Shown here one piece after another: positions 12,323-43,926 of a stretch of 63,854 nt of DNA. Both the position numbers and the translations under genes were made by a program. This DNA comes from Stylophora pistillata (Eukaryota). The stretch covers positions 481,090-544,943 of the forward strand of contig NW_019217945.1 of the NCBI RefSeq assembly GCF_002571385.2, read 5' to 3'. The notes under the pieces were generated by a model. The model saw only the letters and a program-made list of their open reading frames with translations. It had not been told where the DNA came from and ran no database searches. The first letter of the stretch is position 1; the number at the start of each line of letters is the position of its first letter.

Positions 12323-12488
12323 TATATAAACAGAGCTTATAAGAGACCAGAGCTAGATCAGTCCTAAACGAAGAATTATTTTCACCCATCTCTCATTCCC
12401 AAATAGTCACAGCACATTTGATAGCCACAGTCGCAGCTGTCAAGGTTGACTAAAGCCGGAGAGGTTCATTAAGCATTTGAAGGTAAGC
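12323..12488 (+). promoter_or_regulatory. Candidate orphan promoter plus non-coding first exon
   Basis: TATATAAA 12323-12330, initiator-like TCAGT 12358-12362, no ATG in the putative exon, and a consensus donor AAG|GTAAGC after 12482. Confidence 0.3.
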
Positions 12489-20045: not shown

Positions 20046-20337
20046 AATAAAGGCTGATAGTTTCTAAAGAAACTGTTTGGGGCTGCGTCGGTGGGGGTAA
20101 CGAAATAATTTGGATGTATCAACAAAGTTGAAATGGTAAATTGGCCACCGTAACGATTATTCTCGTTGCCATGTTCCCACCATTAACGTAGCTCCATTTT
20201 CTGCCTTAAAAGCACACACAACCCACAATTCCTCTATACGCTCCGACGAAGGGCTAACGCTCGAAACGTCAGCTTTTGTAATCGTTACGGTGGCCAATTT
20301 ACCATTTCAATTTTGTCAGTGATATATCCAAATTATA
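20046..20337 (+). mobile_element. Penelope/retrozyme-type insertion with internal inverted repeat and 13-bp target-site duplication
   Basis: Direct repeat TAGTGCTGTATTG at 20033-20045 and 20338-20350. Near-perfect ~55-bp inverted repeat at 20105-20159 / 20279-20336. Hammerhead-like motif inside. Confidence 0.7.
20240..20273 (+). ncRNA. Minimal type I hammerhead-ribozyme-like motif (U4C core variant)
   Basis: GCT-CCGACGA-A-GGGC(TAAC)GCTC-GAAAC-GTC-AGC: stem I, CUGANGA-like core, stem II, GAAA, palindromic short stem III, GUC triplet. Confidence 0.55.
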
Positions 20338-23136
20338 TAGTGCTGTATTGCTCAGACCTGCCGGTTAAGGTGGCTCAAACTGAGGCCTTGGCCCTTACAT
20401 AGCAGCAGAATATCTCCGTCAATGAACATACTCAGGAATATCAAAGTTTTTCGTAAAATAACAACTCGAAGGTTAAATATCTCCCTCACAAAAAATAACT
20501 ATAACTATATTTAAAATAGACAGCGGAATAATCTATTACAGTTTTCTACCTTACGGCCCTCAAAAACACTCGCATACGGATTAAATAGAGATAATCATGT
20601 TTTCTACTGTTGGAGTTCAATGCAATCTTTGACAGTTTGACCAAGTCAAAACATATTCACAAGAGTTGTGACTCCGTTTGGTGAGAATTGACCAAAACGC
20701 CGTTTGTTGAAATTAGAAGTTTATCGTAAGGATTCTTTGTCGTGCCTTGTCTTCATCGGAAATGGCCTAGTAAGGGACATTTCTGCTCGTTCAACATTCG
20801 ATTCCTAAGTTCCTTTGTCGTTAGCTTCGGCTGTTTCGAGCACTATAACACAGTTACCTAATTAAAATAAGAACATTCTCACTGAAATATTGCCAAAAAT
20901 CCCCGACAAATATCTATCCTCCATAGTTACTGCAACAAGACCAGTTGGTACGTGACGTGAGTGCTTAGCCAGCTGGTTCTTTCATGACGTTTTTGATTAC
21001 GTCAAATCTTAGGATTACGTGCATGTGCTTCGCCGTCCGGTACGTCTTTTCATACATTCTGGCTCCTGATCTTTGTTGAATGCTCCAGAATTTCCTTGAT
21101 ACTATTTCTGTTAAGATGTGTGTTGACTCTAGAAAGCTTTCTGTCAACCGTGGTCAGGGAAACATTTCCCATAAACTCGTCACACCCATTAGATGGTTGC
21201 GAAATGCTTCATATTTGCGAACTAAAATTAAAGAACAACCTTTTCGCCAATGCAAGTTTAAGCATTTATGCACAGACAAAAGCAAGTTTCTTCTCTATCA
21301 GTTTTCACCAATTTATTCACGAATCACTTTTTTGTCATGTTTTCTTCTCGTTGTGTTATTTAATAAGTTAACCTCGCTTCACAGACATCATGATAATCTG
21401 CTGTTCATCCAGCTTATCTCTTCCCGAGCATTTCATTAAACAGACCTCGACAACGACAAATGCCATGGACATCGAGTAAATTTACTGTTGCATTTTGCTT
21501 AGTGTTGTTTGCCCTAATGTTCGATGAGTAACACTCACAAGATAAGTGAACTAATTCCAGGCAGAACTCTCTCAAAAAGCTAAGACTTTATTTAGTGATA
21601 AAAACGGAATATAACTTATACGTGGTCAATATTCGTTGATATCTTTCCATATAGTATATATCTGGTCCGGAAATAAGCAGAACTATTAATAAACTTGTGT
21701 AAAACCAATGCTCTTCCCATCTGCTACTCAACAATTTGAAAGTTTACAATCCCCTTTTGGTGGCCATCTACATTAGATTTTAAGGAGAGAGACATAACAT
21801 TTGCCAATTTGAATCATTAACTGAATATTTTGAATGATTGTACCGAGAGTTTCAAGTTTTTAAACCATAGATATCCTGTGAAAGTTGGTTATTGATGATG
21901 ATCGTTATAAATTTGAGACATTTAAATGGGCGTCTTTATCGCGTTGACAAGAGCCGAATACTGGAGGCCACAAAATGCAGATAAAATGTTATCTTTTGGC
22001 ATCTCACCAACGGGATCATACTTTTCAAAGATGAAAAATTGAAGTCAGTAACAACAGTTTTTCTTTGTTCAGCTACAAGAAACAAACGTTTACGTAGCCA
22101 GCGCAAATTTCTTTGCTGAACTTACTCAAGAAACTGAAGTTTTCTAAACCACTATGATAATATGAAAACTTTGGAAATGTGGAATCATTATATTATTTTT
22201 TCTCCTGTGGCACAGAATTTTTGGAGACACTTAAGAGTTAGGTGTATAATTCAGCAGGAGTGAAAACATGTACGCTATATCTTCTAAGTTTGTGAAGATA
22301 TATATTCAAATACTTTGTAAACTTTATTTAAGTTGAAATCAATAGGTAGACATGTAATTAAGTAAGAAAGATACCGCTGAGATGTTTCATGATCTACGAG
22401 CGCCCCCTCGAGAGATATTATGCGCTATTTTTCTTTACGAAGTGCACTTACAAATTTCTAGCCCACAGTTTCTCACAGAAATTTAAAGTAAAACTGGTGT
22501 AATTGCAACGAAAATAAATATGATTGATTAAGGAGTATTGCTGTATGTGTTAGCAGTATTTAAAGAAGTTGCGTCATCCTACACGAATCGTATTTTCGAC
22601 GAAGAAAACTATATTAAATAATTAAATAGTATGGAAAGAACTTATTCCAGTGTATTTAGAACAAACGAAAAGGAGAAAAAAACCATCGGCGGTGGGGAAT
22701 GTTCATGCGGATTTTACTTGACGAAACAAAAAAAAATTGAAGCCGGTAAATTTCCACGATAAAAGAACCGTGAATCACGCAGTGGGGAGACAAAGAACAT
22801 ACTATGAGAATGACTTCGATCACGTGCATTATCAGGTGCATGATACGGAACAGAAATCTTACCAGGGAGGCTTACCGTTTAAAATTTGCGTGCCCGTGAT
22901 GAGATTATCTCTCGTCAACAGACTGATAACCATATTTATCCCATCTTATCGAAAGATAACGCCATTTATGAAGTGTCAAAATGGACCGGCAGAAGAAATG
23001 TCAATTTGCCAACTGTCATGTGGATCACTGTAGGTCACATGAGAATGTTCCTTCTACAGGGTCAAATAGGTGATTCTAACATTAAGTTTCTCCTGCTTAC
23101 ACAATAGTTGCTGCGGAACAACAGACACGATCAGAA

Positions 23137-26100
23137 ATGAATGGTATTTTTGGACGCCTGCCACCCTGTACAATGAATGGGTACAACTACAGTCGTCCAC
23201 AGAGCATGGAGTTTTACGACCCGACCGAAGCTGTGATGTATGGTAAGAGTGCAGTGATAAACAATGTCCTCTGATTTGGTTGCGTGCCTTGATATCATAA
23301 ATTTTGTCTCAATCCTGATAATCTTTCCTATTGCGCTAAGTGGCTTTAAGACTAACAGTTCTCGACTGACTCCCGTAAAGGATTGTTTAGTCTCTGATGA
23401 AACTGTACAGCGGCATGGAAAAACAACTAAAACAGGAGTTCTTTGTCCTTAGATCTTTCGAGTAGATTTTTAAAGATTTCCACCGAAAAATATAACTCCT
23501 CCACCGAGGTCTAAAAGCATAAAATATACACATATAAACATGACATGTCTGAAATGTCCGAGCAGGCATAATCAATGTTATCGTCACACAAAACTCCCAC
23601 ATCTTCCAAATTGGAAATCTATAGAAATCAGTGCTGAGCTACACTATCTTTCCTTCTTAAAGATCATGTTTTACCACTTTTAAGACGTGACCACGTAACA
23701 TTTCATACCTTATTAGCGTGTTTATAGATTTTCTTAAACATAATTTCTTAGTCGCTTCCTGTTCATGACCCTAATCCGATGGTTCCCTCAAATCCTTGGG
23801 ATAATTACATAAACGTAAGCGGACCTGTTCCAATTTCGAAACAACTCAGTATTATGCTTGGGTGAGATTCTTAAAACATCAGGTCAGAAAGGAAATCTAT
23901 GGCTGCTCTTGTAATGAAGTAGTAACAGGAATCTTTGCATTTGGCAACCGAATTTGCATTTGGACTTTTCCAGAGTGGAGAAAATAAACATACTGTTTTT
24001 TTGCACATACTCCCTACAAGTTAGTGTTAATTTGCATCACTTCTGTTGACTTCGTGTACATCCTTACCTCTTCAAAGTTTACTCAGTGAGTTCCCTACCC
24101 GTCGAGAAACATTTAAGAGCAAAGCTGTAAGTTTGACAATTTTTTTCATGCATCAGCATTATAATCCTTTCAAATGCGTGAGTCTGACAGAAAAACCTGG
24201 ATAATCCCTTATTGGACAGCCACCTTAAGGGCTGGTTTGCCATTTTTCTAATTGATATAGAGATTAAAGCTGACAGAAAGCGGTATGTACAACCCAATCA
24301 CATAACCAAGCCCATCACTCATACGTGTTTTGCTTGGTATAAGAAGACGGATATAAATTAATGCTTTGAGACTAAACTCGAGTTGAAGTCGGATAGCTTG
24401 CAATATGGAATTTACTTGGCCAGGTTTTTTGCCTTGTCTTGGCTGTCCCCAATGTCTAACGTCAAGGTTTTTTGAAGGTAATTATTTTCTGACGTTTTGT
24501 GAACAAATTAGTAAGTCTTGAGATTTTAAATGTTTGGCAAACTGTGGAAATGTTTGCTTGAAAATTGAGGAAGATTCTCTTACAAAGAAGATCGTATCAT
24601 CCATTTCATGTGTTTCAGAGCAGCCAGTTGATTGTAAGCAGCTACTGCTGTAACCCTGAAATACTTAAGCTTGCTTCTCGACGATTCTTCTTAAGGAAAA
24701 GCATTATGAAATAAAACTCATGATGATTACAACTGGATTGCAAAATCACTAAAATGAATGAGAGTCTCAGATGAACGAGTGTCCGTGTCTGACTTAACCG
24801 GTCGTTGCACCTCCTGGGAAGATTTCAATATGGAGCTGGAAAAGAATAATTTGTAACTTTTTCCTTTAGAACTTGTTTAAATCTGGTTCATCCACCCATT
24901 GAAAACTACAAAGAGCTGAAATTCCATGATAATTGCACCTATTGTTGCCTCCTTTTAAAATCGGATGTTTAAGACAGACTAACACTAACCATCATTTCTT
25001 TAGATGGTACATTCTTATTTTTGATAATGTTTTTTATGGTTTTTTTTTAAGTGATAGTTCTCTTTTGTCATAGGACCTCCACGAAAACAACGTCGTGAAC
25101 GTACGACTTACACCAAGGCTCAGCTTGAAATTTTGGACGAGCTGTTCGCCAAAACAAAATATCCGGACATCTTCATGAGAGAGGAAGTTGCTATGAAAAT
25201 TAATCTTCCGGAAAGCAGAGTGCAGGTGAGAGAAAAGAACTGGCTTGAGACAAAAGGATTATATTTTTTGTATATTCTTGTAACTGGGAGAACCCTGGCC
25301 CCCTGTTATGGGGTTGTTCTTCATTGAAAAAATGTGTGCTGTGCCCAAGAAGGTGTAAAGACTCCATCCTTTTCTTGAATCTTCCCGAATTTTTTGTTGT
25401 TTAGATTTTATTGGCCATGGCAAGGTTGACATAACACCACTTTCACAAAATCACTAATGAGTTTGTCGCGCATCATACAATTGAATACATTTCCATTAGA
25501 ATAACCGGTTGCCCAACTGATATCTGCGTTACTTAGAACAAAGATATAATGAGCTTTTAATTCTCTGCTGATGTATTTTGTAATCACCTAAGGACTGTCG
25601 CCGCCCAGCCATTGTAATCGTCGCTCTCAAATATATCGAGCTATTTTTGGTAACGTCTTTCTTCCATTGCGTGGCATACGGAGACAATTAGCATTTTATA
25701 AGGATGATAGATATGCCCAAAATCTTCTTGACTTTGTTTTTAAGGGGCGTTACTTGGGTGATAGCGGATTATAAGTACTTAATTACCCACAAATTACTCT
25801 GTTTATCAACGTTACTGAATTTAACTCTTTTGTTTACAAAGAGCTGTTATCTTAAAACAGAACGCCCGCGTCGGGGACAGATATGGCGAACTTTGAACAC
25901 GTGTTGAAAAATGGCACGAAACTTGTTTTTGAGCTAAAAACCAGCGAAACAGTGATGAAAGAAAGCAAAATGAAACAAATTGATTAAACAGAAGTAATTC
26001 AAGCCTTAGATTTAATGCATGGTCTAAAATACTGCACTACAAAAGGTGAAGTTCGTGATTTTCGCTAGCGTGAGCTGAAACACGGAGTTTTAGGGGCTCT

Positions 26101-27011
26101 GTTTGAATATGGTGGCCTTTCAAGTGCTTGGTATCACTTATCACACCTTAGACTCACGCGAAGTTTACTCTTTTCTTTTTGTTCCAAACGCTACATGCTT
26201 TTATTTTGCTAAATTTTATCTTCCTTTTACCCGTACAGGTAGAATACATGAAATCTTGTAACAATTAAAATCTGATGTGCCTATTTGTCCTTTTTACTGT
26301 ATAGAGTCATATACCTTTTTCTGCCTCATTTTTTTTTTTCTTTCAAAGAATTTGGCATTTCAACTATTTACGTTTGTTTTAAATCATCTCATTCAGTACA
26401 TATTATATGCATTTTCTGTCCCAACTCAAAGTAATCGCAAATTCATGTAGCTCAGTTACCAAGTAAATCCAAATTCTGTCAACTCGCTTCCCATATTTTA
26501 TGAATGACTCTAAACCTCTTTATATAATTTTCTTGTGGATAGCTAATTCTATCCTTTTGTTTCCCAGGTATGGTTTAAAAACAGAAGGGCTAAGTTTCGA
26601 CAGCAAAACAAGCAACAACAAGGCGCCCCAAGCAAGCCTAAACCAACAGTAGCAAAGCCAAGAAAGAGCCCCACACCACCTACTTCACAGCATGTCCAAG
26701 ATCCATCGCCAAAGCCGCCCCCCATAACACAAGCACCCGCACAACAGTTCAACAGCTTTACCTTTAATGGCCCCAATTGGCCTAGCAAACACAACATGCA
26801 AGAAATGGCTAACTTTCATAGACAGGCCAACTATCAAAAATTTATTAATAACGGAATGAATGGATTTCCAACGTCTAATTTTGGCCCTACTTCGCCGCCA
26901 CAAGCTCATTTCTACCCAAACCACGAACAATACTTCTCTTATATGTCAAACGCTGGACCTGTCTCAAACGAGATGTCCCGGAATCGATTAGAATCCACTA
27001 TGATGTGCTAA
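23137..27011 (+). CDS. otx: Otx paralogue 2, isoform a (233 aa). Exons 23137-23242, 25074-25225, 26568-27011
   Basis: [36 protein letters not shown]|[50 protein letters not shown]|[13 protein letters not shown]...TMMC*. Canonical splice sites and the same intron phases as paralogue 1. Confidence 0.93.
24162..24357 (+). promoter_or_regulatory. Internal promoter for Otx-2 exon 1b
   Basis: TAATCC 24162, TAATCCCTT 24202, TTAAGGGC 24225, TATAAA 24352; ATG at 24405. Confidence 0.55.
24405..24477 (+). CDS. otx: Otx-2 alternative first coding exon 1b, [24 protein letters not shown](G); isoform b is 222 aa
   Basis: ATG to phase-1 donor G|GTAATT, in frame with exon 25074. Clear peptide homology to 34217-34295 and 42595-42670. 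Confidence 0.85.
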
Positions 27012-28094
27012 AAGTTCTAATGTTTTATCAAATTTGCCACTAAGCTTTATAAAGCTTCAGTAGAATTTTAAATGTGTATTATGCCATATGACTGTGTATA
27101 GAGAAGCTCTTTTTCGAACTGACGAAAATAGAGAAAGTATTATTGGCTGGGCAAGAAAGAAGAAGTTCTGATTTTAACCATTCAAACAGCCCCTATATCC
27201 TGTTTTGTCAGCATGTTTCATTTACATAATTTTTACAAAACATCAGCTCTGTGGTAGGTTTCCGCATGTCTGTTCAGGTTTCTTTTGGTTTAAGTAACCT
27301 GTAAACACTTAACACAATTCTCTGCCACATAAACTTTGAAACTTGAACGAAGTAGTTATTCTTTTCTCACCAGTTAGTAAAGTTCAAAACTTCGGATAAT
27401 CTTAGTGGGTTCTACGTAGCTTATACCTAGTCTGATCTTATGCTTAGTAGCACAAAGCATCTTCAGTGTCAATTGTGAACAAGATTAAAACACTTCGATT
27501 TTAATGCTTTGTTCCTTCGGACCTAAGGAAGTATCTATGCACGTCTTTCGCAGAGTTGAGATTTATATAAGTGATTAAAGTATATTGCTCATAATAAAGA
27601 ACAATGTGAGTCATGAGTGTAACTTCAATGAGGGTTTTTTTTTTTTACTTTCGCACCCGCTTTCAGGTGGATCTATAGAATGCCAACAATTCACATAATA
27701 ATATATATGTCAAGATATATGTACTGAGGAAAGAGTTTAAATATTGTTCTAAAACTATGATATTCGATAAATAAACCATTAAGTTGTTTTCTTAAGCTAT
27801 ATACTTCCGTTAGTTATTGTCTATGGCATCAGACCTGAGACTTAAGCCACTTTTAAGGGAGCCCTGTAGTCTCGCCTTTGATGAGATTTGGGGCAACTGA
27901 AAAAACTTTCCCAGACTCTATCATAAGTCTTAAAACGATTTTATCGATTATGAAAACACTAAGAGACAACAGTTCAGACGAAGCCATATGTATGGGATAC
28001 ATTTCAACCCCCATGTACCCCTTTTCCCATTCAAGGGTCAATCCTTCTTGGGGCCTATCGACCTTTGCTGAAGAGTTTTAGGTGGGATAATCAC

Positions 28095-28273
28095 AAAAAC
28101 TACTGTTAAGAGAACGAGTACGAGTACGAGTTTACTAGCGTGTTCACATTGCGCATGCGTAGCTCTGTTTGTTAAAAACTACTGTTAAGAGAACGAGTAC
28201 GAGTACGAGTTTACTAGCGTGTTCACATTGCGCATGCGTAGCTCTGTTTGTTAAAAACTACTGTTAAGAGAAC
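28095..28273. repeat. 79-bp tandem repeat, about 2.3 identical copies
   Basis: Units start at 28095, 28174 and 28253 (AAAAACTACTGTTAAGAGAAC...). Contains (ACGAGT)3 and TGCGCATGCG. Confidence 0.9.
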
Positions 28274-30636
28274 CTGTACCATAGTTAAGGTACTATCAGT
28301 GTCAACTTCTAGACGACAGAACTTGCGAATCGACGCTTTTTTAAAGCTAATTTTGCAATTGAAAAACCGATCTTAGTTTTACACCTACAAAAAGATTCAG
28401 CACACAAACATTGTCTAGGCCACAGAAATATCGATCATTCGATGCGAAAAACGATCCATCCTCATAAAAGTCGTCCTGTCTACTCAAAAGAAAAAGGAAG
28501 ATCCTTAACTCAGGTGTCCAGATATTTAGCTCGAGTGGACTATTAAACAAGGGGTATTAAAAATAAAAACCAGAGTAGCCCAGGCCACACGGTTCGTTAA
28601 ATTCACACTGCGAAAGTCGTGTAGTCCTCATAATAGTGGTTCAATTTAGATCCTTTTTCCAATCCCCAAAATCGTTTATTCTAACAAACGTCGTTAAATT
28701 CAAATGAAAGTCTTCCTTTAGAAAACACCAAAGTCGCCCAGTCTACAAAAATTGTTAAGTCTGCAAAAGTCTTTCGGTCTAAAAAAGTTCGGTCAGTCAA
28801 CAAGAGGCTTCCAGTCCAGCAGAAGTCTTTTTGTTCACGAAACTCATTCAGTCCACACTCGGAAGTTGTTTCGGTCCACCAAGAATTGCTCCCTTCCAAT
28901 TAACACTAGATTCGTTCGCCCATCCCAGAATTCGCTTAGTTCCGAGGAAAGTCATACAGACGTCTCCCAATCAGCCAATCATTCTCGTCATCACAAGTTG
29001 CCTACGTCATCATTTGATTTCATTTTTCTTTTTTTTTTTTAAATCGTTTCAATGTGCGCTACAATATGGAGTCCAGACATGTTCCCAAATCATACGTCTC
29101 GAGTGACTCAGTGGTAGGGCCATTTAGTAACTACACAGCAATTTATGCTATTTATGCAATGTATTACATCTAAAGATATTTCATTGCATTTTATGTAATC
29201 TACTATGTTTACCTGGAGGGATTCAAATCTTCTAGCCGATCAGAACCAGCTGTTATCTTCTCTGTTGCCTGGTTTGGACACTAAAACGTCGGAAAACATT
29301 TGAATTTTTAACGTAAACGCCTTTTCCAAACTGGAGACGTTTGAAAACAGATTGCTCCATTGGCAGTGTTGGTTCAGATAATGAAGATAGTCTGAGGCTA
29401 TTAAAAACAGTCTCAAAACAACCATTAGACATGTTGCTCTCTAGATTAAAAGGAAAAGATGGGAAATGTTCGGCCTCGTAAGGTTGAAGTCGTGAAGCCT
29501 TCAGGGGTATTGGGCGCGATTTAAACGGTAGATAGTTGGATAATGGACGATAGGTAAAAAAGAAACATAAAAAAACCTTCTTCTAAAAACACAGGATTAT
29601 CATGCACAACGTATGGGTAAAAACGATAAAAGAAACAGAAAGCGTACGCGATGGTTATAATTTTTTGCTTTGCTTTCGCTGAGACGATGAAAAATAGTTT
29701 TGAAAATGCATAGAGAAGATGGGACCTCATTGAACGTGATATAATTCCTTCAATGAGGAAGTTATCTGACCGCAACACAGACATAGCTTTTATTACGCGA
29801 CTTTTTCCTTTCACGTCCATGACTGAGAGAACGATGTTCGTATATGTTGAAAGACATCGATAATCACGCGATATAGCCTGAGACTAAAATAGCAAATTTT
29901 GACAAATTTTGCTGACGCGTTCTCTTCGTCGTCGAATATCTTGACAGATAGATTAGCCATCCGGCATGACTGGGCTCTAATGAATAACACATTTATGGAA
30001 TAGTACGGGTTCTGTAGTGTTGCACATTAACGATACTTGCCAGCTAGCCGGGATATCTATATGGTTTATGAACTGAAATCAATGCGGGAATTCTGACTTA
30101 GAACAGACGACAAACCACCAAAACAACCAAAGAGCCAGAGACATCCTGTAGCAAGGAAAAGACCCCCAACAACGGAACATGAATTATTTTGTTGTGGAAA
30201 TATTTCGATCGAAGACAAAGTGGGAATTCATTTCGCTAAGGCAGGAAACATTACGAAAGTTTTTTTTTAGCAAAATCCAAAACAACGAACGCTTCTATAA
30301 AACTTATCGTCAAAATACATCTCGCTTCATGTAGCGGCTAGTTTTTAGACGAGCGAAAGACATTTAGAATTTGACCGTCGAAATTACAAACGTTGACATT
30401 TCAACGGTCTAGGATAATGCCCTTGTTAATGCCAACATCTGTTGATTTTAATTTTCAGCCTGCTATTTCTTCGATGACAAGGAGACATTTGTAGTTTTTG
30501 TCTTGTGCTGTTTGGATCACGTGCACTCTTGTTTTGGCGATCTTTGCTCCCTATCTGAAAAATAACATATAGGGATCTCGTGATCACTAGCACGACAAGA
30601 TAAAATCGGGATGATATCTTTTATTGTTAAAAACTA

Positions 30637-30691
<55 letters not shown>

Positions 30692-30983
30692 CAGCCAAGA
30701 TACCATATCTACAAATATGGCTATCTATCATCTCATATCCAACGCGCGCTCGTGGAATAAATGTTAATTATTACTATTTTCTTTTTACCGTCTGCTGCAT
30801 GGTACTATTAAATAAGTTTTTCTTTCGTATTAATTTCTCATGCTTACCTTGTGCTAAAAAGTTGAGGTAAATGGGTGGAACACTCCTCGTTCACAACTAG
30901 TGATTATTTTTTGGAGGAGGAGGGGAGAAGGTGATGTCGGAAGATTCTGGTTGTGTCGCGATCAAATTTGGTGGTCAATTTTT

Positions 30984-31359
30984 NNNNNNNNNNNNNNNNN
31001 NNNNNNNNNNNNNNNNNNNNNNNNNNNNNNNNNNNNNNNNNNNNNNNNNNNNNNNNNNNNNNNNNNNNNNNNNNNNNNNNNNNNNNNNNNNNNNNNNNNN
31101 NNNNNNNNNNNNNNNNNNNNNNNNNNNNNNNNNNNNNNNNNNNNNNNNNNNNNNNNNNNNNNNNNNNNNNNNNNNNNNNNNNNNNNNNNNNNNNNNNNNN
31201 NNNNNNNNNNNNNNNNNNNNNNNNNNNNNNNNNNNNNNNNNNNNNNNNNNNNNNNNNNNNNNNNNNNNNNNNNNNNNNNNNNNNNNNNNNNNNNNNNNNN
31301 NNNNNNNNNNNNNNNNNNNNNNNNNNNNNNNNNNNNNNNNNNNNNNNNNNNNNNNNNNN
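30984..31359. other. Assembly gap (N run)
   Basis: Run of N. Other gaps: 56679-56721, 58952-59144, 62648-62662, and a single N at 54762. Confidence 1.
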
Positions 31360-33240
31360 TAAAGAAGAGCAGCGACATTGGCTGGAACCATAACATCTCT
31401 CATGGACAGACTTCTCTGAAAATGATTTATGCCGATCTGTGTTCTTATAAAACGGAAATCCTTCTTGCTCAAGCAACGTTACCAAGTAACTTTCTCTCGT
31501 CCTTCTTTTTTATTTTCAGTCCAAAGGCGAAAGCATGTTAGCAGTCCGCCGAGCTTGCACGAAATCGCAGTTTCATTTCAGTTCTTTCTTCCTGTTTCCT
31601 TTTATATAAAAAGACAGGATGTCTTATTTTAAACATGTCAAACTGATTGATCAATCATCCGTAACAGTATGAAAGAAATTTTTCAGCACTGTAGTCGAAG
31701 AACACTGACACGCCCGGAAATACAAATATAAGGAGTAAGCGCTAACAAATGTTTTAGGCTTTTCGTAAGTCCTTGGTTTGATTTTTATCTTGCCATTACC
31801 AGGTTTCGTAGTTCTATTTTCATCAATACAGATATTTCTGACCCCACAATTTCATTGTTTAGAGTGTTTCAAAAACCGAACGTGCCTAGCAGAAACAAGG
31901 AAACACACTTACATCAACACTAGATGACGAAATTCCTGCACTGGTCACATCAGTCATTTGGAGTCGTTTGTGGTTTTAAGAAGATTCTACAAATTTGGAA
32001 ATTTTCCTCCATCTCTTTTCAAAAGTATTTTGAGACCCAAGTGTCTGGTAGGCCGTACTAAATGAAAAGGCGTCGTCAAATCTTTTTTGCTACTCTAATC
32101 TGAGAGAAGATCCCGCTCGGATTTATTTTTGCCGGTGAGTAAAGCTATGCCACTAATTCATATCTTGTCGTAATTGTAAACTTCAAAATCATATAATTGG
32201 CCGAGTTTCCGAAAGTGGGTTAACGTTTTCATATAAATTTTTACCTTAATGTAAGGAAAACTGAAATACAGTATGAAAAATTAACGGTATTTCCGAAAAA
32301 CTTATTCAAAACTTTTAACAGTCCTGAATTAATCAAAGAGCATTTTGAAATACTCAAGCATTATGGAATGCATTCGACGCACAGTTCCAAAATGGCTCCA
32401 TAAAAAACAACGTATTTTGTATGGTAAAAAAACAAACAAACAAGCAAAACGAAACCAAGAAAACGGCATGGAGGGTTTTTTGGGATTAGATGATGTGTAT
32501 TAATGTATTAGTCACTAGGCGAACCCTCCATGTGAAAGGACTTTGTATCATTGTATCATCAAGTGTCACAGCCAGAGGGATGTGAGAACCTAGATAGTAT
32601 ATTTCAAGGGATTGATCAGTTCTATCAACTGGCCAAAGAACTATTTTAATCAAACGATGACAAAACTCCTCAGAGAAATGACATACGTTAATTATAACTG
32701 ACCTAATAGCACCATAGCGCATGAAACATTCCGTAAGAGTTTCAATATTTAATTAATACGTAGAAATAGATAAAAATCAATCTTAAATAGTTTTTTTGCA
32801 GTCATTCCACAAATATTTCCAAAAAGATAGAAAGCTAATTAAGTTTCCCGTAAGTAGTTCTCAGTCTTTTCCCCGTCTTGAGCTAGAAAAAAAGTATGAG
32901 AGAAGACTGGGCATTAATTGTCTTAACGCAGTCTATGAATGATGGCTGCCGATCAACGTGTTTGTTTCGCGTGATCGCAATGGAATAATCATTCATCGGA
33001 AGTTGCCGATGTGTCAAGCTGATTAGCTGCAACTTTAAAGATAGTGACGTGACCTTTTGAAAAGAGTCATGGCTAATTTGGGATGTTGGGTTTGTTATCG
33101 ATTCTGGTTTCGTGATTTCTTTCAAGACACCTCACACCACAAGATTGCACACGTGCAAATAACTTCCCTTTTAGGTCAAAGTTTACGACAACACTTTTAT
33201 TTCTCGCACGCTAGGTTGTGTAAGACAGATAGGAGGAAAC

Positions 33241-36188
33241 ATGAATGGACGATTGTCTTCGTGCGCAATGAGCGGATACAACTTTTCCACGCCAAATACA
33301 GACTTACTACTGAACGATTGGTTCCCAGTTTATGGTAAGGAGTTATAATGACCTGTATTGGGTGGTCTTCTTACCTTGCATGTCTATATGTCGCTTGTAA
33401 CCATGTAATATCTTTGATATTTCTCAACATAGATAATCTTTCCTCAGTAATGCTTGAAGCGCAGTAAGTGGGTTTAAGGATAAGCCAATTTTTGTTTAGT
33501 TCCAGTGCTAAAAATATAAAGACTCTCTGTCCATTTATGTTGCTGTAAACTGGCTTGACACTAAAAACAGACGTGGGAATATGACCAAAATAAGAACAGT
33601 TTCTTAAGTTTCACAATTGTCTGTTGTATGACACGTAACATCGTGCCCCAAGTTTATTACAATTCTGTACGAGTGTACAAAGCCAGTTTAAAGACCTCAA
33701 AGAGCTTTGGGCTTTTAGGCTTATCGACTTCCTCTACTTCCCACTGAGGGTTCAAATATTAAAACCTGATTTTAACTTTGCCAAATCCTGTCAAATTCTT
33801 GTTTCTCGCTCTGGGCAGGTGCAGTTAAGGCCTGTACGGTATTTATCTCCGAGCAAATAACATTCGTGCCTAGACATTGTAGGACATAATCAGCCGCCGA
33901 TGAGTAGACATTACAATCCTCGGCAGTTATAAAAAAAATTTCTAATCTTCGCCTGGTCGGTAGATACGGCTTTAACCCAAAAGCATGTCACGGAATACCG
34001 TTATTTAAAGACTGGCTTAACTCTTGTCGGCTTAGAATTATCCTGCCAGCTAAGCCACAAATAGCGGTATAATCCCTTCATCAACATTAAGGGCAACGGT
34101 TCTGATGGTTTCCAAATCTTGGTCGCGTCCTATAAATACTGTGCTCCGCTCAAAGCTCTCTGTCTCGTGAAGAGGAAGGCATCATCGTCAGATACTGACT
34201 ACACTTTTGCACCACTATGGAATTTGCTTGGCCTCCGTTTTCCGTTCCAGCCTGTTTGGGCTGTCCTCAATGTTTAATGTCAAGACTCATGGAAGGTATA
34301 AAAAGCTTGAGATCGTATATATATATATATATATACGTTAAGTCTATTTCTTTCTTTTTCTTCCTTTTCACAAATTTCCTCGACTTTGGTGATAGTCACT
34401 ATTAAACGGTCGTAATTACTGCTCCAGCGGAGAGGAAGAAATTTTCCTTTTTTGAAACAAGAGGGCCTAGTTTACACCACAGTTAAATTTCTGTGCGTAT
34501 TTTAGTTCAAGGATGTTCGGAATTTCATCTCCATCTTGGACGAACGCGGTTGATAGTGTACTTGGGTTGAATTCATATGGAAAAATGGTTAAAATTGTTG
34601 GGGAAAAAATATCCAATTTCCGCAGTGTTTAAACGAAGCCTTGTCCTCAATTCCAGAGCTATAACAGTAATTTTCAGTCGTAACAAGGAGCTACATTACA
34701 CCCAAGATAAAAAGAAAGGAACTTAATCAGGGGTTTTGTAAAACGAAGCAAAGCCTAAAACATTTACTTTTTTTGTTTTATTGATATATGTTTGTTTATT
34801 AACAGGACCACCACGAAAGCAGCGTAGAGAACGAACAACTTTCACAAAGTCTCAATTAGAAGTACTGGATGAGCTGTTCGCTAAAACAAAATATCCAGAC
34901 ATCTTCATGAGGGAAGAGGTGGCCTTGAAAATAAATCTTCCTGAAAGCAGGGTGCAGGTAAATAATAGTCATATTCATCATATGAGGTCAGAAAGTAATT
35001 AAACAGATCCTTTCCCCTTGAATGTCAGCGAAGGTGCCGTCAACTTTCATAGAACAGATTTAACCTTTAAAATTAGGTTACAGTCTGTTCGAAAGGGTTG
35101 GAAGTGTCGAAAAGAGTTAAAACAAATATTTTAACCACTTTTTTTAATACATATATCTGTTAAGATGTCTACATTGTTGAAGCTACAATCGTAGCTGCAT
35201 ATGTGTTTCGGCACATTTCGACTGCTCAGTCTCAAATGCGATGGACGGATCTATTACTTTTTATGGGCAATATTTTAGGTGACATTCTCACACTGGAGGT
35301 TTCATCTTCTGTTTCGGAAAAATGAACAGCCGGCTACAGATTATCAGAGGTCACTGGCTAAATGCTATTATCAACAAATCCTAATATGATATTAACAATG
35401 TTTACTTTAGAAAAATAGAAAATTGCACGAAGTGGAAAGGTGTGCAAATGCTCTCGCTTTTATTTGTTAGAATAGAAGTTTGAAAAATTCTATCACCTGC
35501 GGCGTCTAATTTCTACGAACAGATTATCTTTTTCCAGACGTAACAATCTCAATCAAAGGCAAACAATCGCCTGTCACTCCCCTCTCTTGCATCCATTGTT
35601 GTGTGTAAAGATGACGGATATGACCACAAATTACCGTAACTTGTTGTCGGAGGCGTAACTCTATCAACAAAACAAACCAGATCAGACAGAACGGTGTGGG
35701 TAAAAGCCTTCAATTAATTAGTGGCTAATTTTCCATAGCTTAACCCTTGGCTAGATAATTAATATAAGCTTGCTAAATAGAGGTGTAATCCTATCAGAAA
35801 ATGTCACCAGTGGCGACAGATGAGGTGGCCCTATTCGGAGTATGGCCACAATGTGCACGAAACTCGTATTCTAGAAAAAGTTCGGCATCTGAAATGTTGG
35901 GATCGCGCCTGATTGAATTGTTAAGATAGTTTAGCGATTATGTTTAGTAATTTATTGATATAATTGTCTTAGAATAGAATTAAAGCAAATATTTTGATAG
36001 CGTGAGTTAGTTTGTTTGTAAATCTTACCCTTTGAGGAGTAGATGTCGCACGAATGATAAATTCACGCGATTACTGGTTTAGATGTTCCCGAGGATGTTG
36101 CAATAACCCGTGTTTGATTGTCTTTGAGTCTCTCGTGTCATTTCTGTAATCTAATAAGCGTGGTTTTGGGCATACGTTTTTGTCATTG

Positions 36189-36246
<58 letters not shown>

Positions 36247-36826
36247 GTTTTGTTTTGTTTTTTTTTTTTAGCAGTTTTAGCACAACGCCAAAAAAGGGCG
36301 CTCACCTGGATAAAAAATATTAAGTTTTACGCTCTCCTATTTTCAGAAAACACTCAACTGTCGTTCTGCTTATTCATAGGTTTGGTTCAAAAATAAACGA
36401 GCAAAGTGTCGCCAGCAAAACAAGCAGTCTGCAGGATCCCACACCAAACCAAGTACACTGAAGAGAAAAATACCCTCACCACCCTTGCAAGATCCAGCAA
36501 AGAGAAACACACCTCCGTCGCCACCAGATCAAACAGCCAGAAAGTTGTCTCATAATACGGCGGTGGAATCATGGCCGAAACAAAGCATGAATGCAGTGGA
36601 GCAGAATATGCAAACTATGTTAAAAATTCAGAGGAGTGGACTATATCCGCCCTCAACTGCAGTCAATGGTCACAGGGCTGCTTCATCACAAACTGCGCTG
36701 CAGTCGCAGTTTTATCCGATCCACAAGCCAGATTTTCCGCCGTACGTAAAAAACATACAAATGGCTAACTGGATGGCCATTAATCATACTGTACAACCTG
36801 GTTATTTTGCACCTGCAATGATATGA
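33241..36826 (+). CDS. otx: Otx paralogue 3, isoform a (230 aa). Exons 33241-33334, 34806-34957, 36380-36826
   Basis: [32 protein letters not shown]|[50 protein letters not shown]|[13 protein letters not shown]...PAMI*. Exon 1a aligns with Otx-2 exon 1a and ends TATG|GTAAG. Confidence 0.92.
34034..34136 (+). promoter_or_regulatory. Internal promoter for Otx-3 exon 1b
   Basis: AGAATTATC 34034, TAATCCCTT 34070, TTAAGGGC 34087, TATAAA 34131; ATG at 34217. Confidence 0.55.
34217..34295 (+). CDS. otx: Otx-3 alternative first coding exon 1b, [26 protein letters not shown](G); isoform b is 225 aa
   Basis: ATG preceded by an in-frame TGA (34196). Phase-1 donor G|GTATAA in frame with exon 34806. Homologous to the other two 1b exons. 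Confidence 0.85.
36187..36269. repeat. (TTTTG)n microsatellite in the last intron of Otx-3
   Basis: Direct reading of the sequence. Confidence 0.9.
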
Positions 36827-39800
36827 TTTGTAGCCCTTTATTTCACATAGAACAAAGTAAAAAAAATATTTATTTACTTAATTATTGCATGGGAACGACC
36901 GAACCCCAGTACTTACAACTGTCGATTTAAATTCAGTCTAACATTTGGACGATAAATGTCATTTAGCCCTACCTGCAAAAAAAGCCTGTGTGCATGTTAT
37001 GTTGCTGAGTTGTTATCCCATTAATGGTCTCGTTGCTATTAAAGAATAGTTACTAATATCTGTATTCATTCATAATGTGTCATTACATGGTTCGTACCTT
37101 GAATTTAGGACTATGGACTGGATTAAAGATTATTTTGGGTGTAAAAATGCAATATGTTGAATTCTTCACGAGAGTAAAAAAATATTCATGAGAATAACGC
37201 GATGATAAAGGTTTAAAGTTCTCTTTTTAATGGAGTTGTGTGTTTCTAGGACTGATAACAGAACAGCAGTTTTAGAGCTGAAATGATTGAAAACCAAACA
37301 CTCCCTACTGATTTTCCTTGACCATTTGAAATTAAATACCCTACGTACCCAAACATGACAAGTGGTAAGAGAGAGATCGCATGCATAATTCTTTATTGTA
37401 TATTTGCACAGAATAATCACCACATACTCACAAACTGTATAATTGTACAATTAAAAAATGAGACAAGATATAGTGTATTTCCCGAGTTCTGATTAGTTGA
37501 AAAGGCACAGAATCTGAACCATAAGTACTGAAATAAAGATAAGTACTGATATAAAGAAAGCATTTACAGATATTTATGTGATGTTTTAGCAAAGCAATTA
37601 ATCAAATGGCACTTGTTTGTGAGGGAACTTTTTAGCTGTGAACTTCGTTGACTATCGAAATCCAAGTGTTTTCTTCCTTGTCTATTAAATTCATTATTTA
37701 TATGTTATTAATCATCATTACGATTAACATCATTTGACCGTTTTTACACAGATTGTTTCGGCCGTCCAAAACTGAACTAGTTTGCCATGCTCTGCGCGTG
37801 TGTTCATTCAAGTAAAGGTTCAAAGGGAGAGCACAAAATTTCCGTCTGGGAGGGGAGGGAAGAGGAAAGAAGCTTATTGTGATACGTGTGTTAAAGCCAT
37901 GTGCACCGGAAAAAGTAATGAGCGCGATGAAATGCACTCGCTGGGATGAGCCAAAATGCAATAGACCGGTGTCATTTGATATTCACCCTCCAACCGCAAA
38001 TATCATGATCCTAAATGTTTTGTTTTCAAAAAATTTGCCAAGTCATGTTGAGATGTGAGGAAATGTGTGATTAAGACTTCCTGAATGAACCAGAAATACA
38101 TTCGATGGAATTTCTTTTTTTGTTTAATGGTTTCATGACTAAAAGTTCAACTCATCAATGATAAGTGCTTGGAGATAGCCCGGGTCCTGAAACAACAAAC
38201 ATAATGAATCTTCACTGAGTAAATCCAGGTGATGTACCCAGTGATTTGTAAAAAGAGTGATGGTAACTTTAAACTTAGCAAAAACTCCTGTTTCAACGTC
38301 ACGTCCCTCTTTAACTTAGCATGATTTAAAGTAACCTGCAGTATCTTTCACTTCTCAGTTCCAACTGTCCTTTGTGAACCAGTACAATAACTCTTAATCC
38401 AATTTGTTTGCCATACACTAAGTTTGGGAAATCAAATTTGTGTATTTAATTTCTGCATGATAGCTCATTATTTTCATATTTTGTGTGCCTATATCGGATC
38501 GAATTCCGCTTTTGTCTTACTGCAAAATCTAAACGGTAATGGTTGTCGAAAGGAAACTTGTCTCACAAATCCTACGAGAAGTATCTGTTGAGTGGGAAAA
38601 TTATATATATACTAATTTTTGGCTTCATCGTTCGGCAGAACACTACGAATTTCAACCAAAAACAAAATAACAAACATGTACAATGTTAACAATATCTTTC
38701 AAACAATCAAAAAAGGTCACCATTCAAAACAATGGTCTGTGATATTTCGGTGTTCTTTCATTCAAAAATAACTTTTTTTTTTTTCGCGTTGCTGAATCTA
38801 TATCAATTGACAACTTGACAACAGGCACTGCGAAGTGGATTGTTCACTCATGGATTATAGACCAACTTTCAAATGCTTGATTAGAAAGCCAATGGATATT
38901 AAACAAGTTCTATGTCTGCCTTCAGTAATGATGAAATAGGGTCAATAAAACGAAAAAGAACGAGGATTTATTGTCAGACGAAAAGAAAAGAATTCCAAGA
39001 TAAATTCGAGAAACCTGTCCGGGTTTTGTTTGTTTTGACTTCTTTTAATCCATGTTTTGCGATACTATCGCTGCAAAAAAATGTCGAGGAAATGTTTTTA
39101 TTGAACAAAAAATGTTGTGCGTAAGTAAGGAAGTTCGAACCATGTGGAGCTGCTCCAAGCAATATTAAGTTTTCAGGGCTTTTTTAATTTTTTTTTTTTT
39201 TTTTTTTTTTTTTTTCTTTTTGCACACTCAAAGTTGGCAATCCTCCGCAGACAGAAAGAAAGAATTTGCTTCATTGGAGCCAGCTAGATACAGAATCTTA
39301 TCCGCAGAAAAGCTTCCCACCTGTTACTTTGAATTTGACGATTTTTGCAGTCTCTGAGTGTGACATTTTGGGAAAAATAATACTTCCTTATTTATATTGT
39401 TTAATGTTTGTTATCTCCGACAGTTTGCTTCAGAGCTCCTATTCATTTCAGTTATTTGTAAATTATATACGATGTCATCTGTCTTCTGTAGTGTAAAAAA
39501 AAAATGATTCAAACGTTCTTAAGGTCAATGGGAGCCAACTGCCTTCAGGGGTAAAGTACAAGTTTATCAATTGTCTCAAGAAATTCGCAAATTATGATTG
39601 GTCAATTTTTTATGAACCACGTCGAGTGTTCTTTACACGGAAGATGATTTCACCAAACATGTACAGGCGCACAAGAATCACGAGGTTTTGTAATAAGGAA
39701 TCTTGTTACTTGTTTATTGTTTTAAGTCCTTGACGATACCTTGAGACTTTCGCGTGCTTCTGCAACTTACGCTGTACGTGATCACGTTTGACCTTTTGAC

Positions 39801-41528
39801 ACCTTTGCGTGACTAAGACAGAATTTCTCCTTACAATATCAATACAATATCAAGCACACAAGTAATGAGAATAAAGAAAAATATCAATTAAGGGATTATT
39901 GGTTGATTCAAAGCTAATCGCTCCGAACTAACACTATAAGAATTGTATTGCAGGCAGTAATGAGAAATTATCAATGAGGTCTTGAAAGTGAAAGGGCTAA
40001 CGGTGTCTTTGTAAAGTTTCGTCGCTGTAAATCGAAAATTCTGCGGTTTCTATGTGTGTGGCGGATGATATAAATAACAATTAAAATAAAATAATATCCG
40101 ATGTCAAAACATTACTCAGGTGAAACAGACAGAGCTTTTAATGGCAGTGATATGCTGTGGCTTGTTTGCTCCTGGCAAAGAGTGTAAAGGTAGTGAGTTT
40201 GAGATCGTAATCGGTGAATTACCCAGCCATAAGCTAGAAATGATAACACAAAACATGCAAAAACACCGCGACCTCGTGGCATAATAAATGTAGCCACAGG
40301 GAAAAATGTATAAATAGAATTTTTTTTCATTTTAGACATCAGTTAGTCTCAGTCAATAATCACAGTACCTCCTCTCGCTTTGCAGACAAATCAAGATTAT
40401 TTGCATCCGATCTTAAATTTGTCCTTTTGATGACCCGTCGCTCTGGGCCGGGGGGTACTTAACAAAATTCTACGCAAAGGTAAGTTACCCGGTTCCCTTG
40501 AAAACCATAATGGTCAAAACCTCAACCATGCATGTTGCGGAAAGCCACCATAGCCCTCCCTTCCCCCCTCCCCCTCCCCCTCTCCCTGCCTTTCTCTCCC
40601 TCGTTCGAGCTTTGATCAGAATACCAACTCTATAACGATGGACTCCCTTAAATGTAACGATTTTTACTGGTGTTATTATTCTTGGTAGACAGCTAGACTC
40701 TCGAATGTAACTGTTTAACGTTCGAATTAAAATATTTAGTCTTGATCAGGGAAATGATCTCGGAATAGTATGGTACACCTATCATTTTATGTCTAACCCT
40801 TGGGCACCAGTGTATTTTTCCGGCTGAAGAAACTAAGATGTTTCCAACTTTATTCATCAGTATTTTCTGTTAATTATCGTGAATCTCGTGCAGCAGCTTT
40901 CTTCATAGATAGTCCATAGTTATCTAACTTATAACTACCCACAGCTAAAAATTCTAACAGATTTTGAGACCTAACTAAGTTTTGTTTTTCTTAAAAACAA
41001 TCGTCAGGACAAAGGGTCCACATGGGGTTATCAGTGCCTCAGGGGTTGAGACAATACAATAATAACACATGATATTTATGGGCTGATACTTGACAGAGGG
41101 GAATTTTCTTTATTCGGTCAGAAATATAGAAGCCATCACTGTCAGCAGCCACGTCTGTCTTTCTATTTCAGTTTGTCCTTCTGAATCTTCTAGCATTGCT
41201 AACACAGACAGAAATAATCGGTGCAAATCAGCTTGGATATTTGTATGATTAGCTGACTGGACAGAAAGGAAAGGTAGTAACAAAAGAAATAGTATTTCAA
41301 AGGAAAGATAATCAAGATATAAACAAATGAACCTTTTCTTTGCTCAATATCATTGGGCCAGAAGTTCCGATCAGCAACCGAATATTTTACGTCACAAGAC
41401 CCTTGAACTTAAGCTTCTGAGCTGAAGCCAACAGATCCTAAGCCAATTTTACTTATATGGTAATATTTTCTCCGGAACTGTTAGATTCTATCTGAGACAA
41501 AGAGGAAAACTGAACGAAAGTCACAGAA

Positions 41529-43926
41529 ATGGCTGGTCCCTATGGACGTCTTCCACCTGGTACAACGAATCTTACGCTTATACATGGCATGGGCTTAAAC
41601 CCGTTCAATATGGATTTTGTGAAACTTGAGGCACTCAAATATGAAGGTAAGTTATATTAACCTCTCAGGTCAATATGCTTTATATTTCTAAGTGAATTTC
41701 CGATCTTACCTACCCATCAACCAAATTCACGCCATAGAAAGCGAAAGTTGACATACAAAATAACAATCTAGTGCAGTACACATCAAAGCGTTTTCGTTCC
41801 CTGCTGCCCTGATGTACTTCCTTTTCCGCGAAGTTTCATGAGAGGGAAAGTTTTGCGCTTTCGTGTGTTAAAATCATTTTTGTACAGTATTGAAGTGTAA
41901 GCCTCTGCTAAGAAGGAAACAGCTCATCTTAACGGAACACAGTGTTCATAAAAAAGCCATTTAAAATATTCTGTTAAAGTACAATCCCTGACTCCTTTTC
42001 ATCTGAGTACCTGGCTAGCCAGAAAGGCGTATTCTTCGAGTCAAACCTTCCGTTTGGCCGTAATCTGTTCGGTTTAAGACATTTCTTAAAAAATAATCTT
42101 TCCCATTACTCGGTTACACACTTGTTTTTTTTTTAGAATCCTCCTTCCCTTTGAAAGTATTTGGCATTCTTAGAACATTGCCTTTCATTTGTTTCCATAG
42201 CAACGAAATTCACTTTGCACGTGCTTCCTGTTTTGCGTGTCGGTTACAGAGTCATTAGATTCTCTCGTGACTTTGAGCGATTTTTTGATTGCCCTATTTA
42301 ACATTACCAGCAGATTGTTCATTAATCGAGTTAACGTAAAGTGTCCTGCAAACCTCAAAGGTTCGAGAATTATCTTTTTAAAGCATATACAAGTAAAGGT
42401 AGTAATCCCATAAATTAGAGAGCTCCAACCAAAAGCGCATGAAAAGTAATATCACGGGATGTGTAAAAAGGTCTCAGGGTGAAACTATTCTTATAAATCC
42501 TTAAATTTAAAGCAACAAATTATTGAGACAAGAAGCATTTGCCACTTACTCCTTTAGAGGCGCGAGGATCGACATCTTCATTTTTAGACTAGTTATGGCG
42601 TTAAATTGGATGAGTTGTCCGCCTTACTGGGGCTGTTTTCATTGCTTAGCATCAAGGCCATTCATAGAAGGTATATAGAATATCACCACCGTCTTTTTTT
42701 TTTTTTTAAGCTGAACTGTTTCCAGAGTAAACTGAATCTTTTTGGCACGCACGGATTTCTCTTTTTCCTTAATTTACGTGCGTGTGTTTGATCGATTTCG
42801 AAGCAGGACGTAACCTTTAATTGCATCAGTTTGGTTCATCTTAGGTAAATGCTTCGCCTTTGTCAGCAACGCTACAGCATCATTTATACTTATATAAGGA
42901 TCTTTTTGTGTTTATATGATCACAAGAGCGTTAGCAACAAGACTTCACTTTACAAATTGACAGTATCTTTTCTCCAATAGCCCAGATCGATGAGCATCGT
43001 GAAAGGAATGGGTTCGGCTCGTTACAGAGGACTAATCAGGGATAATGGCAGATTATGATTACCAATAATGAGGCAGTGAAACCACTCTCAGAGATTTTCG
43101 TCAATTTTCTTCGGTCACTAATGACAGAATTTCTTTAAAATTTGAACTTAGAAAAAAACTACGTTGAGAAAACAGACAAATTGTAAGGCGTTTAGCATTT
43201 TTTCATTAGCTGTGATAAAAGCCTTCTTTTCTATGCAGTTTGTAAATTGATACCATGACCAGCAGAATTTAAAAAAAAAAAAAAGTGGTGTTTAACGAAA
43301 ATTTTACTGCCGAGTCTCAAATACCACTCTGCACAGCTTTAAAACAGACATTTTCTATAATCAAAATATGCCAGTTTATTCCAGTTCAATTTATTCTTTA
43401 CAAGAAAGAACATTCTACTTTCTCCTTATCTTATTTTCTAAATCTTAAGAACATAAAGTAAGCCGTTATTTGTGATCAGTTGTCTCGAGTGTGTGAAAAA
43501 GGAAAAATCCGCGGAGTCCCTGACGAAGAAGCAAACTCCACGCTTGTAGATACGTGTTCTTACGAACTTATTTGGTGTTAGTAGCATCTTCGCTTCTTTG
43601 CCCTCTGACTCTCTGGAATAACTGATGTGTTATTTTTCTTTATAATATCGGCGGAGAATGAGAATGTTAGAAGCTGGAGGAGATTATGGCGACATCTTGG
43701 ATCTAGAAGTGTAAACAAGCTTCAGCCATTTTGTTAAGAACTTCTATATGATAACAAACTTTTAATCATTAAGTCTCCTGTGGTCCAAGTGCGCGGGCCT
43801 CAATAGTTCGAACATCTCGGTCTACAATCCACACTCCATTCTAAATTCCTTAACAAATGTCAAATACTGTTTAATACAACTCAACATTACTAAAATTTTT
43901 AAGTCAATATTTTTTTGCGACTCATA

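Follow-up and report, generated by a model that had tools for sequence, protein, structure and literature searches.

Otx genes pattern the animal body axis and the gut, and the stony coral Stylophora pistillata carries four of them in tandem on the plus strand of the window analyzed here, a stretch of DNA of 63,854 nucleotides (nt) from contig NW_019217945.1 (positions 481,090 to 544,943). In three of these genes, Otx-2, Otx-3 and Otx-4, a short, cysteine-rich reading frame, hereafter called exon 1b, lies between the ancestral-type first coding exon (1a) and the homeobox exon. This locus therefore raises the question whether exon 1b is a working part of the genes in which it resides and, if so, what it contributes to their protein products. 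The data reported below demonstrate that 1b is a genuine alternative first coding exon that provides these Otx proteins with a second N-terminus. As an overall explanation, we consider it very probable that 1b acts in each of the three genes as a protein-coding alternative first exon driven from a promoter of its own in intron 1; our proposals for what the peptide does are more tentative.

Exon 1b is an alternative first coding exon

A first-pass annotation, made from the DNA sequence, had placed three ATG-initiated, phase-1 exons at 24405-24477 (Otx-2), 34217-34295 (Otx-3) and 42595-42670 (Otx-4), and the coordinates, peptides and donor sites that it gave proved to be exact. The three exons are 73, 79 and 76 nt long, respectively (all 1 mod 3), and each possesses an ATG in good context (a purine at -3 and a G at +4) and a phase-1 GAAG/GTA donor. 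They are located about 0.5-0.6 kb (Otx-2 and Otx-3) or 1.3 kb (Otx-4) upstream of the homeobox exon. The encoded peptides of 24-26 residues begin with MEFTWPGF, MEFAWPPF and MALNWMSC, respectively, and can be described by the consensus M-E-F-x-W-P-G-[YF]-x-P-C-x-G-C-P-Q-C-L-x-S-R-x-x-E. Only three residues, G-P-P, separate the peptide from R-K-Q-R-R, a basic run that leads into the N-terminal arm of the homeodomain; in 1b proteins, this peptide replaces the ancestral Otx N-terminus M-x-G-...-Y-G.

Spliced transcripts were found for all three genes. A complete Otx-2 1b mRNA is represented by a contig (L025) that maps to 24382-24478, 25072-25227 and 26565-27646, with overlaps of 2-3 nt at the junctions. 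Among the four RNA runs examined, the Otx-2 1a joint (23242>25074, GT..AG) was present in all four and the 1b joint (24477>25074, GT..AG) in one (X10), and sequence words of Otx-2 1b were present in ten poly-A RNA runs. For Otx-3, a public protein assembled from RNA (P0020; 99% identity to Otx-3) leads from 1b directly into the homeodomain, and its four source contigs (L019-L022), which stem from four runs, map to 1b, to 34806-34957, and to 36380 onward. For Otx-4, a contig from a related species (L026; about 91% identity) maps to 42428-42672 and 43967-44122. The three junctions predicted by the first-pass annotation (24477>25074, 34295>34806 and 42670>43969) are thus used in transcripts, that of Otx-4 as seen through the related species. 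In Otx-2, two mutually exclusive 5' coding exons are joined to one and the same downstream exon, and 1a and 1b products are identical in exons 2 and 3. Mutual exclusion follows from the in-frame stops that, in Otx-2 and Otx-3, immediately precede the 1b ATG, and from transcripts that start inside intron 1; because of these stops, 1b cannot serve as an internal exon behind 1a, and a cassette arrangement (1a>1b>2) is ruled out on the same two grounds.

Public databases already contain these proteins. Every Otx exon examined in the window is an exact substring of S. pistillata RefSeq proteins (isoforms X1 or X2): the Otx-2 products correspond to P0263 (1a) and P0266 (1b; XP_022791618.1, OTX-like isoform X2), those of Otx-3 to P0236 (1a; isoform X1) and P0235 (1b; XP_022791659.1, otx5-B-like isoform X2, and also the original model PFX25013.1), and the 1b product of Otx-4 to P0228 (XP_022791633.1, OTX-like isoform X2). 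These entries are automatic models with generic names, identical in sequence to the 1b models of the window. Since the isoforms are in RefSeq, exon 1b is not new to databases, and the earlier belief that an Otx N-terminus bearing CxxC was unknown has to be given up, such N-termini being annotated in this species and in at least eight other corals; the estimate of at least seven proteins from the four genes is consistent with the annotation. The published literature that we searched treats coral Otx at the gene level only and contains no description of the 1b isoforms, their motif, their promoter or their usage. The 1b motif and its divided use by the paralogues thus appear to be undescribed, and what the present analysis adds is the usage inferred for each paralogue, the decayed look of Otx-4 1a, leader exons of Otx-2 and conserved TAATCC-containing blocks upstream of 1b.

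Exon 1b is conserved as a protein-coding segment across stony corals

Genome-wide DNA and peptide searches located the 1b exon exclusively in the Otx cluster. The degenerate pattern G-C-x-x-C-L-x-S-R has 161 matches on both strands of the 398-Mb genome, compared with 129 for the reversed control, so that only about 0.03 matches are expected in a 64-kb window; three were observed, all of them on the plus strand, and each precedes a homeobox exon. Otx-2 and Otx-3 share 65% identity in 1b, as against 40% in 1a and 24% in their C-terminal tails, as the first-pass annotation had surmised, and the peptide has been retained by paralogues in which the flanks of the exon can no longer be aligned.

An exon 1b with its ATG and G/GTA donor was found 5' of the homeobox exon in five coral loci (L012-L016, the last from Pocillopora meandrina), for orthologues of both Otx-2 and Otx-3. 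In an alignment of eight copies, comprising paralogues and orthologues, the conserved stretch runs from the ATG to GAAG/GTA and no farther on either side. Between the window and P. meandrina, Otx-3 1b differs at 10 of 78 nt with a single amino-acid change (dN, the nonsynonymous divergence, 0.016; dS, the synonymous divergence, about 1.0), and Otx-2 1b differs from its counterpart at L012 by 19 nt and four amino-acid changes. Variable sites number 13, 11 and 20 at codon positions 1, 2 and 3, respectively, dN/dS ranges from about 0.02 to 0.15, and differences in length are multiples of three. Across 12 1b proteins, W5, P11, G15, C16, C19 and L20 do not vary, and C13 hardly does; in the pocilloporid Otx-4 proteins the first Cys is displaced, the number of three Cys being kept. 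This substitution pattern indicates that 1b is maintained by strong purifying selection on the protein.

Isoforms of the 1b type are annotated in Pocillopora verrucosa, P. damicornis and P. meandrina, in Acropora millepora, A. muricata, A. digitifera and A. palmata, and in Porites lutea, Orbicella faveolata and Oculina patagonica. With Pocillopora, Acropora, Porites, Orbicella and Oculina all carrying 1b, both major lineages of stony corals are covered. The exon occupies the same position in the same phase in these species, encodes the core P-C-x-G-C-[PS]-[QH]-C-[LI], and is accompanied by a 1a-type isoform from the same gene; behind the core, the tails vary (e.g., ...VSAAHAQV-G in Acropora and ...ATTSFLQ-G in Porites). 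Exon 1b is older than both the duplication that gave rise to the three paralogues and the split between robust and complex stony corals.

Outside this group, 1b was not encountered in the sequences searched. When ten 1b peptides were used as tblastn queries, no match was obtained in the Otx-1 region (1-4700), in keeping with the first-pass annotation, which had found no such exon in Otx-1. The same queries gave chance-level matches only in the sea anemones, for which the search consisted of Exaiptasia OTX (L024; intron 1) and Nematostella OtxA (L023), with Nematostella OtxB and OtxC and the corallimorphs lying outside its scope. A profile was also searched against 1.84 billion representatives, and among the best 150 of these, N-termini of the 1b type occurred in coral proteins only. 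They were not detected in medusozoan and bilaterian Otx proteins, those of Hydra and Aurelia starting with M-S-W-x-Y and possessing no Cys motif. Further N-terminal variants extend upstream of the 1a methionine, one beginning MYYKGG... in a coral (P0002 / P0223), and Exaiptasia OTX has three longer N-terminal isoforms (P0182 / P0183); because of these variants, 5' diversity of Otx genes seems to be common in corals and sea anemones.

A promoter in intron 1 and further promoters of Otx-2

A separate transcription start for 1b is evident, indirectly, from the ends of contigs and from the TATAAAT boxes that precede them. Illumina adapter letters stand directly before 24382 in the Otx-2 contig (L025) and before 34176 and 34180 in two Otx-3 contigs (L021 and L022, respectively). 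A TATAAAT box is situated 30 nt (Otx-2; 24352-24358) or 45-49 nt (Otx-3; 34131-34137, conserved in P. meandrina) upstream of these adapter-flanked 5' ends, and Otx-4 has one at 42492. Exon 1b accordingly extends from 24382 to 24477 in Otx-2 (24 codons plus 1 nt being coding) and from 34176 to 34295 in Otx-3.

Three observations weigh against this account of the 1b transcripts. In three of the four RNA runs, the Otx-2 1b contigs (24301-24518, 24358-24567) continue into the intron. Two Otx-3 contigs reach contiguously to 33823, unspliced and with three upstream ATGs, an extension that represents either a second start site or admixed unspliced RNA. Moreover, the eight-copy alignment shows that the TATAAAT boxes are not kept in distant corals.

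The DNA in front of 1b contains conserved non-coding blocks. The one upstream of Otx-3 1b (33980-34080, plus strand) terminates in GGTATAATCCC, carries a TAATCC site and is 88% identical over 101 nt to a distant coral locus (L012), compared with 78-81% for the homeobox exon; the block upstream of Otx-2 1b (24161-24254) is conserved with distant corals at 72% identity. TAATCC is the classic Otx-type site. It occurs four times in the three 500-nt regions 5' of 1b, against about 0.85 expected, and is conserved in the orthologues, which suggests that the 1b promoters may be subject to Otx auto- or cross-regulation. The upstream blocks of the Otx-2 orthologues also contain a CCAAT-like ATTGG and a TAATTG.

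Otx-2 proved to have additional promoters. Its exon 1a had been taken for a first exon, a view that is no longer tenable: it is an internal exon (23106-23242, with the coding sequence starting at the ATG at 23137; contained letter for letter in P0263) whose acceptor lies at 23106. This acceptor is fed by two non-coding leader exons at 12451-12482 and 19899-19930, each ending in AG/GTA, one of which was found in runs X2 and X10 and the other in X7 and X14. Transcription of Otx-2 therefore also starts from promoters about 3 and 10.6 kb upstream, and together with the 1b promoter this gives the gene at least three promoters. On the minus strand of the same region (12901-24067), a single X10 contig links 12873-12897 with the sequence from 24065 onward, with GT..AG present only in the minus-strand orientation. 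This contig, of which 25 letters lie on one side of the joint, points to a spliced antisense transcript; the upstream exon of that transcript would overlap the stretch immediately 5' of Otx-2 1b.

The paralogues appear to divide the two promoters

Public contigs were assigned to the Otx-2 products in a ratio of 130 for 1a (P0263) to 1 for 1b (P0266), and to those of Otx-3 as 24 for 1a (P0236) and 43 for 1b (P0235), plus 10 and 5 for the 5'-truncated 1b forms P0238 and P0242, respectively; contig counts per isoform and the contig depth of one run are poor measures of expression. In Otx-4, the ancestral 1a is represented by a remnant at 41529-41610 (plus strand), recognized by tblastn and by reading all three frames. 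Its two halves, the latter of which ends in ...KPVQYG, lie in different frames, and GA stands where the donor used to be; a possible new phase-1 donor, the GT at 41560, would yield a short in-frame version. The ancestral 1a of Otx-4 thus looks decayed, and for this reason the two-way choice of N-terminus that the first-pass annotation ascribed to all three genes holds for Otx-2 and Otx-3 and is not shown for Otx-4. From these data we infer that promoter use is divided among the paralogues, with Otx-2 relying mainly on 1a, Otx-3 mainly on 1b and Otx-4 apparently on 1b only.

The three clustered paralogues, with their seemingly different use of promoters, offer a clean example of duplicates dividing promoters among themselves. 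For the interpretation of existing data, it matters that gene-level expression values for coral Otx genes blend two proteins. A published cell atlas of S. pistillata lists Otx1/2 as a shared gastrodermal marker (PMC8162421).

Possible functions of the 1b peptide

Transcription from the intron-1 promoter bypasses 1a, exon 1b is joined in phase 1 with the homeobox exon, and the 1b N-terminus takes the place of the ancestral one next to the homeodomain arm. The metal, haem, redox or acylation roles raised by the first-pass annotation are conjecture. One possible, and so far tentative, role for the peptide is that of a thiol module built from G-C-x-x-C and the third Cys, either as a zinc or iron-sulphur (Fe-S) half-site that a second molecule would complete, or as a redox-sensitive pair; in the 1b isoform alone, such a module would adjust how the neighbouring homeodomain binds DNA or pairs. 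Rather unlikely, in our estimate, is the farther-reaching proposal of a stony-coral innovation that makes one Otx isoform responsive to metal, Fe-S or redox state, e.g., through a Cys cluster to which two molecules, bound at paired TAATCC sites, would both contribute.

The idea of a thiol module has to contend with several results. Pfam searches with the 1b peptide and with whole proteins returned the homeodomain only, and a sequence search of the PDB yielded nothing but PsaC look-alikes at non-significant E-values of 2.9 to 10. AlphaFold2, run with 12 sequences, assigned residues 1-30 predicted local distance difference test scores of 46-56, with a weak helix at residues 17-24. Furthermore, the peptide possesses only three Cys residues, the first of which is shifted in pocilloporid Otx-4. 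When residues 1-32 were compared with the ESM Atlas, only homeodomain clusters were retrieved, with scores below 0.8.

About as likely as the thiol module, if we were to guess, is a short linear motif for docking or activity in which F3, W5, P, Y/F and L would contact a co-activator, a co-repressor or a TALE-type partner; the cysteines would then only shape the motif or be incidental to it, and no metal or redox chemistry would be involved. W5, P11 and L20 are indeed as invariant as the cysteines, the low-confidence models are what one would expect for a linear motif, and Otx N-terminal isoforms elsewhere, such as the alpha and beta forms of sea urchins, differ in activity. This possibility, held as tentatively as the thiol module, sits uneasily with a G-C-x-x-C that is invariant in 12 of 12 proteins and with a third Cys that has been kept, though moved, in pocilloporid Otx-4; Cys conservation is unusual for a purely hydrophobic motif, and the peptide matched no motif family described so far. 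NFAT5 has an isoform with an alternative first exon that is reported to be lipid-anchored at the membrane until it is released, and 1b could by analogy be an S-acylation signal that tethers its isoform at membranes. The cluster of three Cys residues in a hydrophobic N-terminal stretch, restricted to the alternative-first-exon isoform, would suit such a signal; we nonetheless guess that a lipid anchor is less likely than either a thiol module or a docking motif and regard it as improbable, because the peptide has no Gly2 for myristoylation and directly adjoins the DNA-binding arm, a position that speaks for a function on DNA.

Two further explanations dispense with the peptide. Were the conserved segment to act as DNA or RNA (enhancer, promoter or 5' leader), with 1b merely supplying a start codon, the strongly conserved non-coding blocks with TAATCC just upstream would find a natural place. 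The conservation of 1b itself, however, is confined to the interval from ATG to donor, its length varies in steps of three, changes accumulate at third codon positions with the low dN/dS values given above, and the peptide persists in paralogues with unalignable flanks, all of which makes this explanation very improbable. That the three reading frames arose by chance or belong to a dispersed repeat family is next to inconceivable: their short length is all that speaks for it, and it is ruled out by genome matches confined to the cluster (the motif count elsewhere being in line with that of the control), by the spliced transcripts, and by the conservation across species. The alternative-first-exon reading of 1b is thus the one that we adopt, with its peptide acting by a mechanism for which the thiol module and the docking motif are both tentative candidates.

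With its conservation across stony corals, its position against the DNA-binding arm and no counterpart described so far, the Cys-rich N-terminus offers biochemistry a concrete target. If it were a metal or redox regulator, promoter choice would decide whether Otx targets respond to the redox or metal state of the cell, which would be relevant to gastrodermal cells hosting photosynthetic symbionts.

Organization of the Otx cluster and its surroundings

All four genes encode a homeodomain with Lys50 (Q-V-W-F-K-N-R/K-R-A-K) and have an intron between Q46 and V47, and all four thereby show the features of the Otx/orthodenticle class of K50 paired-like homeodomains; Pfam recognizes the homeodomain in the RNA-derived protein P0020 with E = 2.9e-21, and Orthodenticle B of Acropora millepora is the nearest named relative of Otx-2. 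Otx-1, which is of the OtxA type, has coding exons at 518-620, 1918-2069 and 4238-4588, with exon ends read from the sequence. The homeobox exon of Otx-2 (25074-25225) is followed by exon 3, whose coding part including the stop is 26568-27011 and whose 3' untranslated region runs to at least 27646. In Otx-3, the coding part of exon 1a spans 33241-33334, the homeobox exon 34806-34957 and the coding part of exon 3 with the stop 36380-36826, with a 3' untranslated region reaching at least 37651. The homeobox exon of Otx-4 lies at 43969-44120 and its third coding exon, including the stop, at 45486-45830; all of these exons are on the plus strand. An assembly gap (30984-31359) is intergenic, lying behind the Otx-2 stop (27011) and ahead of the Otx-3 1a ATG (33241), outside all exons discussed.

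Intron 2 of Otx-2 contains an isolated island of RNA contigs (25575-25756; depth about 12; runs X7 and X14) with no adjacent intron coverage. (TA)n microsatellites occur right after the Otx-3 1b donor (34312-34335) and right before the acceptor of the Otx-4 homeobox exon (43922-43949). Downstream of the cluster, the list of open reading frames reveals exons of other genes at 51800-55320 and 61246-63853, one of these genes having armadillo-like repeats and another ending in NB-ARC/NACHT-like sequence and running off the window. According to the same list, reverse-transcriptase-like frames (...YRRYVDDTF...) followed by a GIY-YIG-like nuclease segment are present at 57864-58845, with assembly gaps on either side; this segment is probably a retroelement fragment.

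Comparison with known systems

Among cysteine motifs, the closest local likeness of the 1b peptide is to PsaC, a protein with a 4Fe-4S ferredoxin-type CxxCxxC, through the string C-[IL]-G-C-x-Q-C-[VL]. The peptide fits the first three Cys residues of the 4Fe-4S motif CxxCxxCxxxCP but has no fourth Cys-Pro and stands in an unrelated context; with this residue pair missing, PDB E-values as high as those noted above and no Pfam match, 1b does not fit the 4Fe-4S ferredoxin type, and the likeness is a lead at most. The Sp/buttonhead box, to which the first-pass annotation had likened the peptide, is likewise a short Cys/Pro motif N-terminal to a DNA-binding domain. The analogy fails on spacing, 1b reading CxxCPxC and not CxCPxC; in addition, the 1b motif is not preceded by a basic residue and does not stand next to zinc fingers, and no homology was detected.

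In its genetic design, exon 1b has closer parallels among homeobox genes. Alternative promoters and N-terminal isoforms are known from the alpha and beta Otx of sea urchins and from vertebrate OTX2. We know of no Cys cluster in the alternative N-termini of sea-urchin Otx, vertebrate OTX2 or PITX2. PITX2A, PITX2B and PITX2C are N-terminal isoforms of a paired-like gene (PMC2330153). In all of these cases, as in the coral genes, one gene possesses several promoters, and its products have the homeodomain and C-terminus in common and differ at the N-terminus. The coral 1b N-terminus is dissimilar in sequence to those of Otx, OTX2 and PITX2, and the coral arrangement stands apart in being triplicated in tandem paralogues, with a usage that appears to differ from one to the next.

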